This document shows positions 1 through 52,800 of a stretch of 64,000 bases of DNA, piece by piece. Within the stretch, counting starts at the first letter, position 1, and every line of letters begins with the position of its first letter. The DNA is from Octopus bimaculoides (taxonomy: Eukaryota), in contig NC_068986.1 in the NCBI RefSeq assembly GCF_001194135.2, positions 74,196,776-74,260,775 on the forward strand, written 5' to 3'. The translations under genes were made by a program, and so were the position numbers. The notes below the pieces were generated by a model. The model was given only the letters and a program-made list of their open reading frames with translations. It searched no databases and was not told the DNA's origin.

Positions 1-20
1 AAAAGTATAAAAAAACGGTG

Positions 21-81
<61 letters not shown>

Positions 82-121
82 ATTATTTTAAGGAAGAAAG
101 TCAAAGCAAGACTCCACATTA

Positions 122-182
122 ATTGCGAATTAGCTAATTTCAAGACTAAGATCTTAGATAGATTTTCTATCTTCAGCGCAAT
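122..182 (-). ncRNA. Hammerhead-ribozyme-like motif (type I, Penelope terminal-repeat style)
   Basis: Minus strand: ATTGCG-CTGAAGA-(28 nt)-GAAATTAGCTAAT-T-CGCAAT; 6-bp stem I, intact CUGANGA and GAAA, 10-nt palindromic stem III; stem II closing pair non-canonical. Confidence 0.6.
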
Positions 183-187
183 ATATG

Positions 188-465
188 TGTTATAAACCCA
201 AACTGGAATATCTAAATTTAAAAGGTTATAATCAACTAAAAATACAGCAATCTCAATACAAACAAAGATTACTAAATTGTAAGCAAAACCAAACTTCAGC
301 ACAATAACAGTTTTATGCAGCAAGTTGCTACAGTCTTGACTAACTAAAAACCAACACTGAACACATTGTGCCGCAAACAGAATAGAACTCTATGCAGCTG
401 CACTGCAAGCAAATAACAGCAATTGAGACAATCAAAATCACGTGATCAAAACTAAAATCACAACA
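188..465 (-). repeat. 3' LTR of the Gypsy element
   Basis: TGT...ACA termini; direct repeat of 4530-4809 with about 19 differences by hand alignment (~93% identity). Confidence 0.95.
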
Positions 466-481
466 TTTTCCCCCTCTAAAG
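466..481 (-). promoter_or_regulatory. Polypurine tract (minus strand ...TAGAGGGGGAAAA) abutting the 3' LTR
   Basis: Plus strand ttttccccctctaaag directly follows the LTR boundary at 465. Confidence 0.85.
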
Positions 482-1427
482 AAAAAGAACAATTAACCAA
501 CAAAATGCAAAATACAAACATAACCATGAGCCAACAACGTAATGATGTGGCATTTCATAAGCGTAACACATTATCAATCAGAAATTTAACCTATCAGGAA
601 ATTTTTTTTTGTTCTGGATGAATGCCAGTGCAAAGTAGTTTCAGGTTCTGGTTCTTGGGCTGGTGTAGGTGGGACAGAATCAGTCACGGTATCAGAAAAA
701 CCACCACGGTGCTCATGCATTTGAGTAGGATCAGTGTCAGCAACATCGGTTTGATCCCTACTTAACTGATACTCACTCCTCAGTCATTTTGCCAGTAGGA
801 GCTAAATCTCTAATGGACACAGTACTTTCACATCCATCTGGGTACTGCACCCTCCCATGGTTAGGGTTAATTTGCACCAATTGGGCTTCATCTACTAATA
901 GATCATACTTATTGCATACATGTTGTTTAACAAACACTTTGTCAGGTCCTTGCATTAACCAAGTAGGAACAGAAACACCACACATAGAACATCTGGGAAA
1001 TTTAAAGAATCTCTCATGCGGGGTCTCATTAGTTGTTGTGCATAATAATGAATGTTGTGAATGCAAAACTTCTGGAAGCACAACTTCCCATTGAGAAACT
1101 GGTAAATTTCTGCTATGTAAGGCCAATTTAATGGAATTCCATATTACTCCATTATACCTTTCACATTCAGCATTTCCATGAGAATTGTACACCATAGAAT
1201 GAGTAATCTATATACCCCTATCGTACAGAAATTGTTTAAGTTCTTTAGATACAAAACATTTAGCATTATCACTATGAATAACTGCAGAAAATTTGAAAAG
1301 ATTAAACAAAACCTTCAAATTACTAATAACGGAATGAGCACTAGTATCAGTGCATGGAAAAATAAATGAAGAACATGAATACTCTTCCACAACAGTTAAA
1401 AAATAATGGTTCTTTGATACTGAAGGT

Positions 1428-1742
1428 GTGGAGGCGCAATGGCCCAGTGGTTAGGGCAGTGGACTCGCAGTCGGAGGATCGCGGTTTCGATTACCAGACC
1501 GGGCGTTGTGAGTGTTTATTGAGCGAAAACACCTAAAGCTCCATGAGACTCCAACAGGGGATGGTGGTGACCCCTGTTGTACTCCTTTGCCTCAACTTTC
1601 TCTCACTTTTTCTTCCTGTTTCTTGAGTAACACTGCGATGGACTGGCATCTCGTCCAGCTGGGGAGGAACACATACACCACTAAAACTGGGAAACTGGGC
1701 CCATGAGCCTGGCTAGGCTTTAAAAGGGCACATAGATAGATA
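1428..1742 (+). mobile_element. tRNA-derived SINE inserted in the Gypsy integrase
   Basis: tRNA-like head with A/B boxes, (TAGA)n tail, 12-bp TSD GATACTGAAGGT at 1416-1427 and 1743-1754; removal restores GPLPSVS-KNHYFLTVV in frame. Confidence 0.92.
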
Positions 1743-4529
1743 GATACTGAAGGTAGGGGTCCTTTAAAATCAACACTCAATCTTTCAAAAGCTTGAGTAG
1801 ATTTAATTACTGATGAAACAGAGGTTTTAGTAAAGTGAGGCTTCAACTCACAACATTACACAATTGTTAGTTATATGATTTACACCATCTACAGAGTATA
1901 GTAAATTCTAGACTTTAATATAATGAAATAATCGTGTGATCCCAGGATGACACAGTACTGCATAAACACAGTACAGTTCATTATCAGTCGTAGCTGTGCA
2001 ATATGTATATGATAAAGCATCTGATGCAACATTAAACTTACCTTGGTGGTAAATATCAAATTTATACTGGGCTAGTTTGATTCACCAACGTATTATCTTT
2101 TCATTTTTAGGTCTACTGTACTTTTGACAATTAAACATAAAAGCAACACTGTTTTGATCACTTATTAGTGTGAAGTTACATTCAAAAAGAAAATGAGACC
2201 ATTTTCTCACAGATTCTACAATCGCCATCGCCTCTTTTTCAATACAAGAATAACAACGCTCACTTGGGTTGAGAGTTCTTCAAAAAAATGCAACTGGCTT
2301 TCCATTTTGGTGTAAAATGCCAGATATAGCTAACTCCGATGCATCTGTTTCTATTGAGAAAGGAAGACTTTCATCAACCGTTTTTAAGGTAGCATTTGTT
2401 AAATCATCTCGTAAAGCTTTTAAATTTGACAAGGCTTGTTCACTCAAAGGAAAATATTTAGTATCAACCAACGGTTTTATCTTTTCAGAGCATTTTGGAA
2501 TCCATTTGGAATAATATGCAAATAAACCAACAATTCAACTCACTGTTTTGTGGGTACTAGGAATAGGTAGTTCCAACAAGGGTTTTACCTGGTCAGGGTC
2601 AGGCTTCAAGTTATCATTTTGAATTTCATAGCCAAGCAATCGAATCAGTGTAGCGCTGTAAATGCATTTGGCATCATTAAAAGTTATATTACAGTCTTTA
2701 GTAACTTGAAGAAAATGCTTTAAATTTTGATCATGTTCTTCCTTCGATTTACCACACACAGTTATGTTGTCGATATATGCAAAAGTAGCTCTACAATTAT
2801 GGCTTTCAATTATATTAGCTATCACTCTCTGGAAACAGGGCACTGCATTTGTAAATCTGAAAGCAATATGTTTGCTTTGATATAATTTTCCCTGTGCTTT
2901 GAAAGGTCGACCTTCAACTGGAATCTCAACTTGATGATATGCACTTTAAAGATCCAGTGTGCTAAAATAATTAAATTGAGCTTTTTTTGTGACCATGTCA
3001 TGCATATTTGGCAGTGGATATCCATCTAATTGTGTAAACTTATTTATAGTCTCACTATAATCAATACACAGTCTCTTGTGATGATTTTCTCCTGATATTA
3101 CCAATACCTGGACTCTCCAGGGTGAGACACTGGGTTCAATTACCTGTTCTGCCAGATCGTGGCTTATAGTATCAGCAATAAATTTTTCATTATTGGCGGA
3201 CTGTCTTCTCAATTTTGTAACTTTGGGTTTACAGTCAGAGTTTAAATTTCAAACAACCTCAGTGTAATGCAATTGAGAGCTCCCAAATGTAACGGGGGCT
3301 TGTTGCCGTCAAAAGTAATTTGTACATGTTGATGCTGTTTTAAGAAATTTTGTCCTAAAATTACATCTACAAACAAATTATCAAGTACCACCAACTTTAC
3401 TTGCTCGTAAATTCTTCCTTGAAGTTCAATTGAACCCATACAAAAACCGTCGCTTTGGGAATGATTTCCATTGACAGCCATGTTAATTTCATTCCTTTCG
3501 GACTTCACCAATAATTTGGTTTTCTTTTTTTGCAAAGTCTTTGCTAATATGATTCATAGTTGAGCCGGTATCAATCAAAGCAAATGCTTTCCATACCATC
3601 AACTGTTATTGTATAATTAACTTTAGTAGCAGCTCCACCTTGATATAAAACCACGGCAAAGTTGCCATCAAGAGCTACTGATATCTTATCAAAATTTTTG
3701 CGGTTACTTGACCAGCATTCTTGAGCAAAATGACCAAAATATCCACATTTGTTACACTTGCTCCACCTAGTGGGAAACTTAAACCTCAGATGAAAATCAT
3801 TAGATCTGCAAAAGGGGCAGGACTTTTGCATTCATTTTATTGCTGCACAAGCTGTGTTTCAGTCAGGAATTGAGATTTTGTCTTCTTCACATGGAATAAA
3901 TGTTGACGAACAGCTTCCCTGGCTATTTATATCAATATGACTGCTATTATACACTTCGGAATTCCTTTGAGCAACTTCCAGTGTGTGAGCTTGGTTAAAT
4001 ATTGCTTCTAAAGTTATCACCGTATCTTGAACATTTACTAAAAGTCTAAGGTGAGTTGAAGATGACGTTAATGCTGAGATAAATGCGTCACAAACAGCTT
4101 CATTGTTATGAGTCTCAGTGTCCACTGCTCTGTACCCGCAATCTTTAGTTAGTCATTTCAATTTCTGTAAATAGTCGTCAACAGATTGACTTGGTTCTTG
4201 TTGGCACGTCATTAAAAGGTGTCTTGCAAAAATAATGTTCAAGGGTTTCACGTACAGTCTCTCCAGAGTTTGAATTGCTTCTGCGTAATTCTCATATTCA
4301 TTTATGAGTTCGTAAACATCTTTATCTAAGTGCGCTATTAAACACCTAATCTTGCTTTCATCAGTGAAAGGCAGTTCAGGTGGAAATGATTCTAAAAATT
4401 TTTTAAAGTTCTGAACCAATATTTCCATTCTTTTGAAGCTTGACTCGAACTTGGATCAGTGGTGAACAAATTTTGTTTTATAGATTTACTGTCTATTCTC
4501 TCTTTCTGGTTATTTTTAGTTGATTAAAT

Positions 4530-4809
4530 TGTTATAAACCCAAACTGGAATATCTAAGTTTAAAAGGTTTTAATCAACAAAAAAATACAGCAATCTACAA
4601 TACAAACAAAGATTGCTAAATTGTAAGCGAAACCAAACTTCAGGACAATAACAGTTTTATGCAGCAAGTTGCTACAGTCTCGACTAACTATAAACCAACA
4701 CTGAACATATCGTGCTGCAAACAGAATAGAACTCTGCGCAGCTGCACTGCAGGCAAATAACAGCAATCAAGACAATCAAAATCACGTGATCAAAACTAAA
4801 ATCACAAAA
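4530..4809 (-). repeat. 5' LTR of the Gypsy element
   Basis: Direct repeat of 188-465; one terminus mutated (ACA to AAA on plus strand). Confidence 0.95.
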
Positions 4810-4823
4810 ATATATGAACTTAT

Positions 4824-4887
4824 ATTGTGGTGAAGATAGAAGAAAATCTATTTAAGATTTTAATCTTGAAATTAGCTAATTCACAAT
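4824..4887 (+). ncRNA. Second, inverted copy of the hammerhead-like motif (core C3 mutated to G)
   Basis: ATTGTG-GTGAAGA-...-GAAATTAGCTAAT-T-CACAAT; reverse complement of 122-182. Confidence 0.5.
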
Positions 4888-5047
4888 TAATGTGGTGTCT
4901 TTTTAAATATCTTCTCTGTAGCACAATTTCAATCGCATGTATTTATGGAGTTTGTTCAACCTCTTGATAAACTCCGACACTTGGGTCAATTCGTAATGCT
5001 CGGACATTGATTCTGTATGGAGGAGATAAGTGTTGTTTCAACTTTAT

Positions 5048-5085
<38 letters not shown>

Positions 5086-5348
5086 CCTATACGAAAGTCA
5101 TTATATTTAAACAAAGTATAAGCAACTTTTCAAGTGAGAATTTTGCTACTTTGATAACAGTTACAATACTTATTTTACCAAATATTTGGTTGATATTTAA
5201 ATACACAAGTATATATATATATTTATATATATAATTATTAATTTAATATATAAATTGTTTATTTCCATGCTGACTATCATTAATGTGATTTTTATCCTTA
5301 TTTTATGAGTGTATATATATATATATATTATATATATATATATATATA

Positions 5349-5969
5349 GTGATATTTTAAATTCTCAATCGCAGAATAATGCTAATAATATAGCCTGAAC
5401 AGGATAAACTATCCCTATTTTGCAGAGAAAAGTGTAGGTGACTAGCTGTGAACTCGAACTCACATCCCCGTCATTACATGTGACGATGCTTTTGCCGATT
5501 AAGGTAAACTACCCACTACAAATTCCTCTGCAAATTAAGATATATAAATCTCGCATTATGAGACGCTCTCAAAATATCACTTCTTTAACTTTCTAAAAAA
5601 GACATCTCAACGCTTCTAAAAGCAAGCTCCGCTTGTTTATTTACGTTTGTCGTAATTTGAATTTAATATATAAGAGCATCTCATAAAGCGAGATTTATAT
5701 ATCTTAATTTGCAGAGGAAATTGGGTAGTTTAGCTTAATCGGCAAAAGCATCGTCACATGTAATGACGGGGATGTGAGTTCGAGTCCACAGCTAGTGACC
5801 TACACTTTTATCTGCAAAATAGGGATAGTTTATCCTGTTCAGGCTATATTATTAGCATTATTCTGTGATTGAGAATTTAAAATATCACTTCTTTAACTTT
5901 CTAAAAAAGACATCTCAACGCTTCTAAAAGCAAGCTTCGCTTGTTTATTTACGTCTGTCATAATTTGAA

Positions 5970-17631: not shown

Positions 17632-19062
17632 CAACACTGTCCTACCCAGTGTCAACCACTCTAGTGTTACTTGGTCAGCATTTAACAAGGTGTTGAGTTG
17701 CGCAGCTATTTGTCCATGACATTCACCAAATCTTTTGATTCAGTAGCCTTGAACTCCATCTGGTCCCAGAGTCTTCCAGTTGCTCATTTTTTATGCTGAT
17801 TCCCTTCACTTCCCTAACTGAAATTATTAGTTCTGCCTGTTTTGGGCAGACTGCTGTTTGATTCAGTTCTTGCAACCATTTAGCATCCTTCTTGCGCTCC
17901 TTGTCTTTGCTCCAGATATCACTTCAAAACCTTTGACTTTCATTGTTATCTGGTATCAACTTTTCATCTGTACACTCTCCATTTATTTCTTTATAGAATC
18001 TCTTCTTATCTACTCTGAATAACCTATTCTGGTGGTAACCCTTCATTCTTTGGTCATATCTTACCATCTTTGCTTTCTTTGCAATGAGACGCTATTTCAT
18101 TTCCTCCATTACCACTTTCAGGTCCTTTCTTTCACTATTATACTTCCTTTTCAGCGCCCTGTATTTTTGTTCGCTTTTAAGTTCCCCTTTCTCTTTTCGG
18201 TCTGACACAGAAATGTCCTTCGAGAGCATATCAAAACTCCACATGTATTCTTCTTTTCCAACATGGATCTTTTCTTTTGTTACTCCCATTATATTTCCTT
18301 TTCTTGACATCAACTCCCACGTTTTCTGCTACAACAATACTTGCTGCCTTGATCAAATTATTTGTTTCTGTGATGTTGTTTGTTCTGATGTATTTCAGAA
18401 TTTCATTGACATTTTTCGTTTCTTGGCTCAATTTCCACCAATCAACCTTTTTAAGATTGCAAATAATGTTGCTATCATTCTCCTGTAGGCTTGCCCTTAT
18501 TCTGTAGTAGATTGCCTTTTGCTCATCTGTCATGTCACCATTAGTTTTATTGTCTTCTTTTAGATCATCTATATGTCTCTCATCAAGTAAACTACCACTC
18601 CTCCTTTCCTGTGCTATGAGATTACTTCTATTTGTAAGAACTGCATTTTCATCCTTATCTCTGCTATTTTCCAAGACCAGTCTTTTGATAGCTTCGAACT
18701 CTACTTCAGTGAACCAACGATGCTTTCTTATTGCTCTAGCTTGATTACATAGCCTGTGTTCCGCGAGTTGAAACAATCCCTTTTCCCTCTAATGATCATA
18801 TATACATTGTCGGTAATCCCTAATTTGAGCACTATTTTCATTTACCAGGTTGCTCTAGTAGTAACACTCCATGACCACAGCATTAATTTGCTTGCTCCAT
18901 CTATGCCATGTGTGGTGGTCCCTTTCTGGATATTAACAGGCTGGAGCTGGACCAAAATTTCTCAGCCTGCCAGATGCAACACTGTCACCATCAATGGCTT
19001 CAGTTTCATTACCCCTGTTTTTCACAATATTTTGTTTCTTCATTGTCCCTCATATGAGGTAG
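17632..19062 (-). mobile_element. 5' portion of an R4/Dong-like non-LTR retrotransposon ORF, decayed
   Basis: LCNQARAIRKHRWFTEVE, ITETNNLIKAAS, PCWKRRI, QNRLFRVDKKRFY, NWKTLGPDGVQG motifs in broken frames. Confidence 0.82.
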
Positions 19063-49776: not shown

Positions 49777-52411
49777 TCTTGTGTATATTTTTGGTTCTTG
49801 TTTTCTTGATAACATATGGATACAGTTATGGCCATGTGATTATGAAGTTTCCTTATCATCAATCCCATGACATAGAGTTTGAACGTAATGGAAACTTTGC
49901 CACATGTTTTCTATGAATAAATCTTAGTCCAGCATTGCATTGTGAATAAAATTTGATCAACAGAAAATAAACGCCACCACATCAATGAGTAAATCGACAT
50001 TTGTTTTAAAAGCATGTTATTCAGCTGCCCCAACTTTCATAAAAGCACACACACACACACGCACACACACACACACACATTCATATACATATGCATGCAC
50101 ACATATATGCATGCAAGGGTGCACAGACACACACTATGAAGTAGTAGTAGTAGTAGTAAGTCCCCTGGACATTAATGTCTTTGAGTACTAGGATTCACTG
50201 GGCCAGTTACCTGGTTTCTATGGCGTATAAGTGACCGAGATCATGACATAGCCCTTGAACAGCACACCAGTCATAGTTGTGTGGTAAGAAGCTTGCTTTC
50301 CAACCACATTAGTTCTGAGTTCAGTCCCACTGCATGGCACCTTAAGCAAGTTTTTTTCTACTATATCCTTGAGCTAACCAAACCCTTAACGACTGGTGCT
50401 TGTGTGTTTATATCCTCGTAATCTAGTGGTTTGCCAAAAGAGACTGATAGAATAAGTACTAGATTTACAAAGAATAAATCTTGGGGTCGATTTGTTTGAC
50501 TAAAACCCTCTAAGGCAGTGCTCTAGCATGGCCACAGTTAAATGACTGAAGTAAGTTAAGGATCTTTGCAGTTTCCATCACTGTTTACAATTATCTTTAA
50601 AAATAATTATAATGTAATCATATAGATGTAATTTTTGAATCCGAATTTGTTCATTTATTCCAGAAAACTTTTGCAAAAATGTTATATGTGTTCGAAGCTT
50701 GATAATTTTTAGAATTTTCAGCCAATCAGAAAACAGCACGTTCACTGCCTCTTCCATCATCAGAGTGTAGGGCACTGGCATGTCAAAACATTAAACTATC
50801 TACAGTAAACAAACCAGCAGGAGTTGCTACAAATAAGTCAAAACAGACATTTGTTAGTTAAAGAAATTGAAGAACAAAAGTTTGCAATACACTCTAGGAT
50901 TTTATATAACAAATTATTTTTCTCATATCTCGTTTTCCACATAAATTCACAAAAATAAGAGTCAACCATCAAACTGTGTGTCCCACACCTGCATTTGTTT
51001 CCTACACTCCTTGTGTGCATGCACAGCATCTTTGGTTACTATAGAAACAGATGTGTAAAATACTCACTTCTGATTGGCTAAAATACCCAAAGTTTTCATA
51101 TTTTAAAGGCTAATGACTTTTTAATTATGGATTTATAGGAAAAATGAATTTCATTTTTATAATCAGTATACAAAACTTACTCCATAGACCAAATTTGAAA
51201 ACAATTGGAACAAAATTGTAAACAGTGACGAAAACCACAAAGATCCCAACTTAAAGAATTTTAAAAAATGTATACGGTGGTGCTCCAGCATGACCGCAGC
51301 CACATGATTGAAACTAGTAAAAGTATATGCACATATATACATATAAATACGCACGCACACACAGTGAAATAAAAATATATGTCTATGTGCAAAGTTGCAT
51401 CAAAGCAAACAACGCTAACTTGTGAAGTTACATAATTTTAAGCAAAAGGTGTATTAAGTCATTTGATAAACAGAGATGGAATAAATAAGTTACGGATTAT
51501 TAATTTACGACCTTATACACTATACCATGCCTTAAACAAGAAACAGCAAGTGCCAAGGGAAATAACTCTGTCGAGAAATATGTATAAATGTAATACAATA
51601 ATTACCTAAAAATTCACAGTGTTGTTGTTGTTGTTATTATTTCAAAAGATATTATGTATTCTATGTATTTTAAATATGTGATTATTTCAAAATTTTACCG
51701 AATGAATATGTTTTTATTATGTTTTTAAAGAAAAACATATGCATGTTTACTGAGACAGACGAGAGATAGAAAGGGACATAATTAAAAATTTGTAGGAGTT
51801 ATTGCCCTTAGATAATTCTTCACTTTGCTGTCTTTTCAATTTGTTTTTCTTTTATATGAAATCCATAGATATAAAAAAAATGACTTATCACATGATTATT
51901 TCTAATGACCTAAAGGAAACAAGAAATCCTAAAGGACTCTAAAGCTGAATATAATTATAGATATTTTATAGCGTTGATGCTGCAGCCAAAAGTCTCTGCT
52001 TTCATTAATTCACAAATAATTTGCATGAAATAAAATGGAAGAACAAATCTATAATACATAATGTAATATATACATAATANNNNNNNNNNNNNNNNNNNNN
52101 NNNNNNNNNNNNNNNNNNNNNNNNNNNNNNNNNNNNNNNNNNNNNNNNNNNNNNNNNNNNNNNNNNNNNNNNNNNNNNNATATATGCATGCATACATACA
52201 TACATACATACATACATACATACATACAATGGACTTCTTTCAGCTTCTGTCTATCAGATCCACTCACAAGGCTTTGTTCGACCCAAGTCTATAGTAGAAG
52301 ATACGTGCCCAAACCCAGCACCATATGGTTGGGAAGCAAGCTTCTTACCACACAGCCATGCCTGCGCCTATGTATAAACTTCCTTTTCATTTGTGTTTAT
52401 CCTATGACTTT

Positions 52412-52800
52412 GTGGAGGCGCAATGGCACAGTGGTTAGGGCAGCAGACTCGCGGTCATAGGATTGCGGTTTTGATTCCCAGACTGGACGTTGTGAGTGTT
52501 TATTGAGCGAAAACAACTAAAGCTCCACGAGGCTACGGCAGGGGATGGTGGCGAACCCTGCTGTACTCTTTCACCACAACTTTCTCTGACTCTTACTTCC
52601 TGTTTCTGTTGTACCTGTAATTCAAAGGGTCAGCCTTGTCACACTGTGTCATGCGGAATATCCCCAAGAACTATGTCAAGGGTACACGTGTCTGTGGAGT
52701 GCTCAGCCACTTGCACGTTAATTTCACGAGCAGGCTGTTCCATTGATCGGATCAACTGGAACCCTCGACGTCGTAAGCGACGGAGTGCTAACAACAACAT
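52412..52800 (+). mobile_element. tRNA-derived SINE sharing its 5' ~190 nt with 1428-1742 but with a different 3' half and (AAC)n tail
   Basis: Direct alignment. Confidence 0.9.

Follow-up and report, generated by a model that had tools for sequence, protein, structure and literature searches.

A degraded long terminal repeat (LTR) retrotransposon of the Ty3/gypsy group (Metaviridae), without a chromodomain, was present on the minus strand of the window, that is, the whole 64-kb stretch of Octopus bimaculoides DNA analysed here (64,000 nt of contig NC_068986.1), and carried at its primer-binding-site position an 18-mer complementary to its own LTR. The same anatomy was conserved in relatives with other sequences, and the two complementary segments covaried. 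The compact, chromodomain-less animal lineage of Ty3/gypsy elements to which the copy belongs probably starts reverse transcription by self-priming similar to that of Tf1, as judged from sequence comparison. Tf1 RNA anneals to its primer site through its first 11 nt and is cleaved by RNase H between nucleotides 11 and 12 (PMC7175516, PMC10085805).

The 18-mer (TTTAATCAACTAAAAATA) occupied positions 4511..4528 (minus strand) and was separated from the end of the 5' LTR (...TATAACA) by a single spacer base, A, at 4529. The earlier note had placed it one nucleotide past the 5' LTR on the sense strand and had described it as lacking the TGG start of tRNA-primed elements; reading the sequence (4528..4511) confirmed both points. 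The complementary segment, about 40 nt inside the LTR, is called here the LTR arm, or putative self-primer. The arm of the 3' LTR (227..244, minus strand; sense TATTTTTAGTTGATTATA) paired with the primer site at 17 of 18 positions, its plus strand (TATAATCAACTAAAAATA) having one mismatch to the 18-mer and being exact over 229-244 (16/16). The arm of the 5' LTR (4569..4587, minus strand; sense TATTTTTTTGTTGATTAAA) contained a 1-nt insertion and a substitution, and its plus strand (4569-4586) had 3 mismatches to the 18-mer but was exact over 4569-4578 (TTTAATCAAC). Because each LTR retained positions lost by the other, the LTR at insertion would have paired at 18/18 positions around a loop of 40 nt, so that the 18-bp stem rebuilt jointly by the two LTRs in the earlier note was upheld. 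This loop (4529..4568, minus strand) contained an internal hairpin in the fold, and would correspond to the remainder of R plus U5 under self-priming. The arm of the 5' LTR terminated at its 3' end in the hexamer ATTAAA (TTTAAT on the plus strand, 4569-4574), which was mutated to ATTATA in the 3' LTR; the overlap between arm and poly(A)-type signal seen earlier was thus real, and proved to be a conserved trait of the lineage, as described below.

Chance complementarity in AT-rich sequence, or a rearrangement relic of a single copy, is a very improbable source of this pairing. The region is AT-rich, and weak matches to the 18-mer were found elsewhere in the window (35447, 49952 and 59638, 3 mismatches each), but none of the three had a partner arm and they were dismissed as chance. 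For the window alone, a 16-mer complement anywhere in a 279-nt LTR of this composition had a probability of about 1e-5; when 799 internal 22-nt windows were compared with the 3' LTR, none reached 16 nt, the longest match being 12. The RNA fold of 4490-4610 (minus strand) included the stem and had a free energy of -26.1 kcal/mol (z = -3.5), with 0 of 200 shuffles as stable. The comparative data, in which the same architecture recurred in 34 distinct relatives with other sequences, refuted the chance explanation.

Relatives were collected with a reverse transcriptase (RT)-RNase H query, which gave 248 proteins at E <= 1e-10, the best of them 45-56% identical, with Clonorchis, Trichuris, Macrobrachium, Xenia, Mnemiopsis and Hydra as the named ones; the loci compared (L numbers below) were the genomic loci of the named relatives and 80 metagenome or assembly loci. 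Eighteen elements (relatives and copies) were defined solely by their LTR pairs, with no selection on the primer region, and served as the unbiased test set. An exact LTR complement of 11-17 nt was present in the first 22 nt past the LTR in 15 of these 18, and 0 of about 720 internal windows per element had one equally long. The complement was 11 nt in L002 (18 nt with one mismatch) and 9 nt plus an imperfect extension in L088, and the site of L026 had decayed by deletion. Relatives with 40-56% RT identity (Mnemiopsis, Hydra, Xenia and many metagenome or assembly contigs) retained the pairing in differing sequence, and a scan of all loci for the signature gave 34 distinct arm/site pairs, including those of Mnemiopsis (TAGCAGATGAA / TTCATCTGCTA), Hydra, Xenia and one Tara contig; weaker candidates were L013, L040, L062 and L083-85. 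The primer sites differed widely (TTTAACTAGCTAAA, TTTTAACAGCTTA, TTTATTCAGCTAAAAC, TTTAACAAACAAAAG and TCAAATAAACTTAAA, for example), and each complemented its own LTR. In the compared loci, inverted repeats 11 nt or longer and spaced 25-130 nt apart occurred about once per 5-7 kb, a background from which the chance of one falling in the 3-nt window was about 5e-4 per element.

The covariation test across related families suggested in the earlier note was positive, pairing being kept with differing letters. Thirty-two distinct arm/site pairs were aligned in fixed register with their loops replaced by a constant linker (alignment A2). Changes on both sides were found in 15 of 16 pairs, the covariation score was 0.769 (0.173 in shuffles), and slid registers were 30-48% paired; when primer sites were swapped among elements, the observed score was reached in 0 of 20000 trials. 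Paired cells amounted to 92.4%, vs. 60.7% in shuffles, a percentage that is inflated, to the detriment of the self-priming reading, because the loci had been chosen for an exact complement of at least 11 nt; the unbiased figure for pairing is that of the LTR-defined subset (15/18).

Concerted change was seen among near-identical copies. Compared with L023 and L028, to which it was almost identical in the rest of this region, L021 carried T in place of G in both LTR arms and, in the primer site, A in place of C; L012 was intermediate, with the arm changed in both LTRs and the primer site not yet matched. In tRNA-primed retroviruses, plus-strand strong-stop DNA copies the primer, and a mismatched primer site is overwritten by the primer. 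By the same logic, concerted changes of arm and site are predicted if the arm is the primer, and the change in L021 is expected if the arm is copied into the primer site. The LTRs of L016, L017, L070 and L003 also contained, 15-35 nt upstream of the functional arm, an incomplete second copy of the arm sequence (for example ATTTTAGCT, present twice in L016, and, in L070, AGTTTAGTTGATTTT ahead of the arm); these might be traces of aberrant primer copying.

A tRNA is an unlikely source of the match to the 18-mer, to judge from the sites themselves: none of 33 primer sites began with TGG, and the sites varied by family while each fitted its own LTR. The Rfam scan of positions 1-5200 at E <= 1 gave only noise, on a (TA)n tract. 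ARAGORN called no tRNA in the 64-kb window and made one doubtful call in 31 related loci, and the absence of usable tRNA genes for comparison with the site in the window and these loci leaves some room, to the disadvantage of self-priming, for a rather improbable alternative in which the duplex is a conserved leader structure only (poly(A) masking, packaging/dimerisation or control of gag translation) and priming is by a host RNA or tRNA fragment. Leader stems involving U5 are widespread among retroelements, and here the duplex spans the poly(A) hexamer and, in some elements, also the start codon of gag, points that favour this alternative. The stem, however, was placed exactly at the primer-site position: sites started 0-2 nt past the terminal CA of the LTR, CAA preceding 22 of 31 sites, and the gag ATG, where locatable, was 13-44 nt from the first base of the site and overlapped the stem in L001 and L011, which leaves no room for a separate primer site before gag. 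Sites that vary by family would also not fit any single host primer, in addition to their lack of TGG, and the three-site concerted change in near-identical copies is better explained by primer copying than by selection. A purely structural role fits the data worse than the second alternative, priming from the 3' copy of the arm, which is considered below.

Under self-priming the transcript would start at, or just upstream of, the arm of 11-19 nt, which itself lies 35-90 nt before the LTR end. The arm would fold back on the complement beginning one base past the LTR, the RNase H of the element would cut at the 3' end of the arm, and extension of the freed 3'-OH across U5 and R would yield about 25-80 nt of minus-strand strong-stop DNA. 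Plus-strand strong-stop synthesis would later copy the RNA arm, so that the primer site of the progeny would be rewritten and the complementarity of arm and site maintained. The earlier proposal of self-priming is therefore supported by comparative pairing and covariation, and it is from these and the anatomy that we infer the start of transcription, the cleavage by RNase H, the priming step and the masking of the poly(A) signal. The arm-site stem was within the minimum-free-energy fold of every element folded. The arm was followed by (G/A)CC and, in the folds of most elements, by a small hairpin (RCCU...AGGY) that stacks on the primer duplex and recalls the U5-IR-like stem-loop required by Tf1 according to titles cited in PMC4600332.

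The 3' end of the arm was AATAAA in 11 of 33 arms, ATTAAA in 7 and GTTAAA in 5. The presence of AATAAA or ATTAAA in 18 of 33 places the arm next to the 3'-end processing site, and hence in, or at the edge of, R; R past the arm would then be only 10-30 nt, which is short, yet inside the retroviral range. The duplex of the arm would hide the poly(A) hexamer (AAUAAA/AUUAAA) of the 5' leader, leaving it exposed in the 3' LTR. The animal spread of the signature comprised a ctenophore, a hydrozoan, an octocoral, the host of the window and many unplaced marine hosts. The wider reading, that an ancient chromodomain-less Ty3/gypsy lineage across animals self-primes and that its self-primer doubles as poly(A) signal, one duplex serving both, is a tentative one, perhaps slightly easier to doubt than to accept.

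Several observations weigh against self-priming from the 5' arm. About 20 further loci with a 5' region lacked a clear signature, though they may be decayed copies or more distant clades. The search for TATA-like motifs found no positional peak and no fixed distance upstream of the arm, and in L091 and L008 a TATA-like run preceded the arm by only ~10-15 nt; if this is a real TATA box, the start of transcription would lie downstream of the arm. Among the contigs examined, none was transcript-derived or poly(A)-ended, and the folds gave the primer duplex and one adjacent hairpin in most elements, the two flanking "pretzel" duplexes not being evident. Some of these points would suit an unlikely alternative in which the 3' copy of the arm supplies the primer: the arm would end U3, transcription would start just downstream, and only the 3' end of the RNA would carry the arm, which would anneal to the site, either within its own RNA (cyclisation) or on a co-packaged one, and be processed to a primer. 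The hexamer at the arm end suits a poly(A) signal terminal to U3, with no suppression needed at the 5' end; a conserved TATA at about -30 from the arm start was lacking, and the TATA-like runs of L091 and L008 lay near the arm. A 3' primer would predict covariation and the concerted change in L021 just as well. Such priming, on the other hand, has no precedent that we know of, needs an extra cleavage that would part the primer from the R sequence on which the first strand transfer depends, and confines R to the 10-30 nt between start site and poly(A) site, while the simpler cis hairpin of 25-80 nt was the minimum-free-energy fold in all elements.

A demonstration of self-priming is known only for fission-yeast Tf1; for fungal and vertebrate Tf1/sushi chromoviruses, and in plants for the Tcn1 clade and the TAR lineage of copia elements, it has been inferred (PMC6317226, PMC6934838, PMC10085805). 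The self-primed Tf1/sushi group includes Tf1/Tf2 (Schizosaccharomyces pombe), Tj1, Tosmo, sushi-ichi, Maggy, Skippy, Cft1, Boty and Tcn1, and self-priming of Tf1 needs a multi-duplex RNA structure (PMC7175516, PMC10085805, PMC4600332). The present lineage was compared with this group by anatomy and domain content. Both lack a primer site of tRNA type, have a sequence directly past the 5' LTR with complementarity to the LTR interior, form a foldback with R-U5 as the loop and an extra stem-loop beside the primer duplex, and share the Ty3/gypsy gene order. In contrast to Tf1/sushi, the present lineage lacked the defining chromodomain at the integrase C-terminus, occurred in animals, mostly invertebrates, including a ctenophore and cnidarians, and had a duplex of 11-19 bp (11 in Tf1/sushi), a poly(A) hexamer as the 3' end of the arm, much shorter LTRs and leaders, and an RT motif that was often YxDN, in addition to having no evident pretzel.

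Neumann et al. (2019, PMC6317226) predicted self-priming in plants for the chromoviral Tcn1 clade and, within Ty1/copia, for the TAR lineage (Houba, Osr-1); the prediction was based, as here, on an LTR complement of at least 10 bp starting 0-5 bp past the 5' LTR. These cases indicate that self-priming recurs in unrelated LTR-retrotransposon lineages; they differ from the present one in superfamily or clade and in host kingdom, and a poly(A) hexamer in the primer was not reported there. A compact gag-pol, short LTRs, invertebrate spread and the lack of a chromodomain are shared with Mag, SURL/C-clade, CsRn1 and errantiviruses (PMC6238403, PMC3286476). Mosquito Mag elements use Leu, Ser or Arg tRNA primers (PMC3286476) and errantiviruses Ser, Lys or Leu tRNA primers (PMC13524379); unlike these examined non-chromoviral animal clades, which are tRNA-primed, the present lineage had no site starting with TGG, and its likeness to Mag is a descriptive one. 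Surveys of invertebrate gypsy clades leave primer sites unexamined (PMC6238403, PMC8556966, PMC8220671). No report of self-priming in non-chromoviral animal gypsy elements was found in a search that covered mostly literature outside subscription journals, and an earlier mention is possible. Troyka elements were ruled out by their CG..CG ends and 3-bp duplications.

The membership of the window element in Ty3/gypsy was apparent from the order of Pfam domains along the minus strand: protease, RVT_1, RT_RNaseH_2/RT_RNaseH and rve, corresponding to gag-PR-RT-RNase H-IN. The 5' LTR (4530..4809, minus strand), in which the sense start TG was mutated to TT, and the 3' LTR (188..465, minus strand; sense TGTTGTGATTTTAG...GGGTTTATAACA) were direct repeats of each other with 93.5% identity (6.5% divergence) and a sense strand of TGTTGTG...TATAACA (TG..CA ends). 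The polypurine tract (AGAGGGGGAAAA; 466..477, minus strand) abutted the 3' LTR on its upstream side, and ATATATG was common to both flanks (181-187 and 4810-4816), as a short target duplication. Between the LTRs, all on the minus strand, were gag remnants with a CX2CX4HX4C (CCHC) zinc knuckle, interrupted by stops and frameshifts (3571..4428), an aspartic protease remnant (3242..3535; Pfam gag-asp_proteas, E = 2e-4), the reverse transcriptase and Ty3/gypsy-type RNase H with in-frame stops (2082..3212; Pfam RVT_1, RT_RNaseH_2, RT_RNaseH), and the integrase, with zinc-finger region, rve core and C-terminal part (773..1990; Pfam rve). The integrase pieces gave no match to a chromodomain, and none was found in the integrase C-terminal open reading frames (ORFs) of L001, L003, L004 and L010, nor in P0002 and P0099, in agreement with the non-chromoviral appearance noted earlier.

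The integrase was interrupted by a secondary insertion, a short interspersed element (SINE) of 316 bp (1427..1742, plus strand) antisense to it, with a tRNA-like head, a (GATA)n tail and a 12-bp flanking duplication (GATACTGAAGGT; 1415-1426 and 1743-1754). The SINE head included box A/B-like sequences (GGCCCAGTGG...GGTTTCGATTACC) and was not called as a tRNA by ARAGORN or Rfam; a further copy of the SINE was at 52411-52607. With stops and frameshifts throughout, the SINE in the integrase and diverged LTRs, the window copy is inactive, and no further copies or solo LTRs of the element were found within the 64-kb window. RT motif C was of the form Y-x-D-N (FAYIDNITVCG, about 2760-2790 of the window, minus strand) in the window element and 13 of 20 relatives, and Y-x-D-D in the other 7 (alignment A1). 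Asn thus often replaces the second catalytic Asp in apparently recently active elements, some YxDN relatives having LTRs 97-99% identical; YVDN was noted earlier in Caenorhabditis elegans Cer7-12 (PMC554778).

The relatives were very compact elements, 3.7-4.5 kb long and bounded by LTRs of about 87 to 332 bp, that shared a G-rich polypurine tract followed by TG(T/A)(T/C)GTG and had the Pfam domains RVT_1, RT_RNaseH_2, RT_RNaseH, Integrase_H2C2 and rve; 5-bp target duplications were TATTG (L008, of a Mnemiopsis leidyi family with 99% identical LTRs) and GGAGT (L023), and the closest solved-structure match was Ty3 Gag-Pol (E = 1e-62). The contigs of L017, L018, L022, L025, L027, L030, L033 and L092 were circularly permuted, with exact end overlaps of 31-184 nt: the LTR-internal-LTR arrangement collapses into a circle, and end overlaps mimic LTR pairs in many metagenome/Logan contigs. 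The apparent LTR pairs of L019, L022, L025, L027 and L043 were discarded as k-mer overlaps of collapsed contigs or coding repeats. No LTR pair was found for Clonorchis (L005), L009 or L010, though L010 displayed the arm/site signature. Two element-sized Logan contigs were rejected as transcripts (L092, a k=31 circular collapse, and L091, genomic or chimeric), and the starts of contigs L084 and L085, 26 nt upstream of the arm, were uninformative on the start of transcription.

The flanks of the element (108-187 and 4810-4901) were mutually reverse-complementary over 61 nt (92%), reaching about 85 nt, and (TA)n tracts lay beyond them on either side; the retrotransposon is inserted at the centre of a palindromic repeat resembling a miniature inverted-repeat transposable element (MITE) or a foldback element. 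A large near-perfect hairpin at 5348-5889 (arms 5348-5515 / 5722-5889, 168 nt, 97% complementary), with a nested pair at 5519-5569 / 5673-5723 (94%), is probably another repeat of foldback or MITE type. An ORF of 181 aa (MFQLAEHRLCNQARAIRKHRWFTEVEFEAIKRL...; 18231-18776, minus strand) adjoined long (TAT)n and poly-Leu or poly-Ile coding microsatellites, and microsatellites and N gaps were very abundant across the whole window.

For the host, the element has no bearing beyond ordinary transposon biology. For the family, self-priming would, if the reading is true, extend beyond the chromoviruses within Metaviridae to a second Ty3/gypsy branch in early-branching animals, and would bear on which is older, self-priming or tRNA priming. 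The idea has been voiced that hairpin self-priming was ancestral to LTR retroelements and tRNA priming came later (PMC3601003), and this idea would gain support. Self-priming would also explain why these compact and abundant elements are overlooked or wrongly scored by tools that rely on tRNA primer sites, and would make the lineage a natural case of a coupled primer duplex and poly(A) signal.

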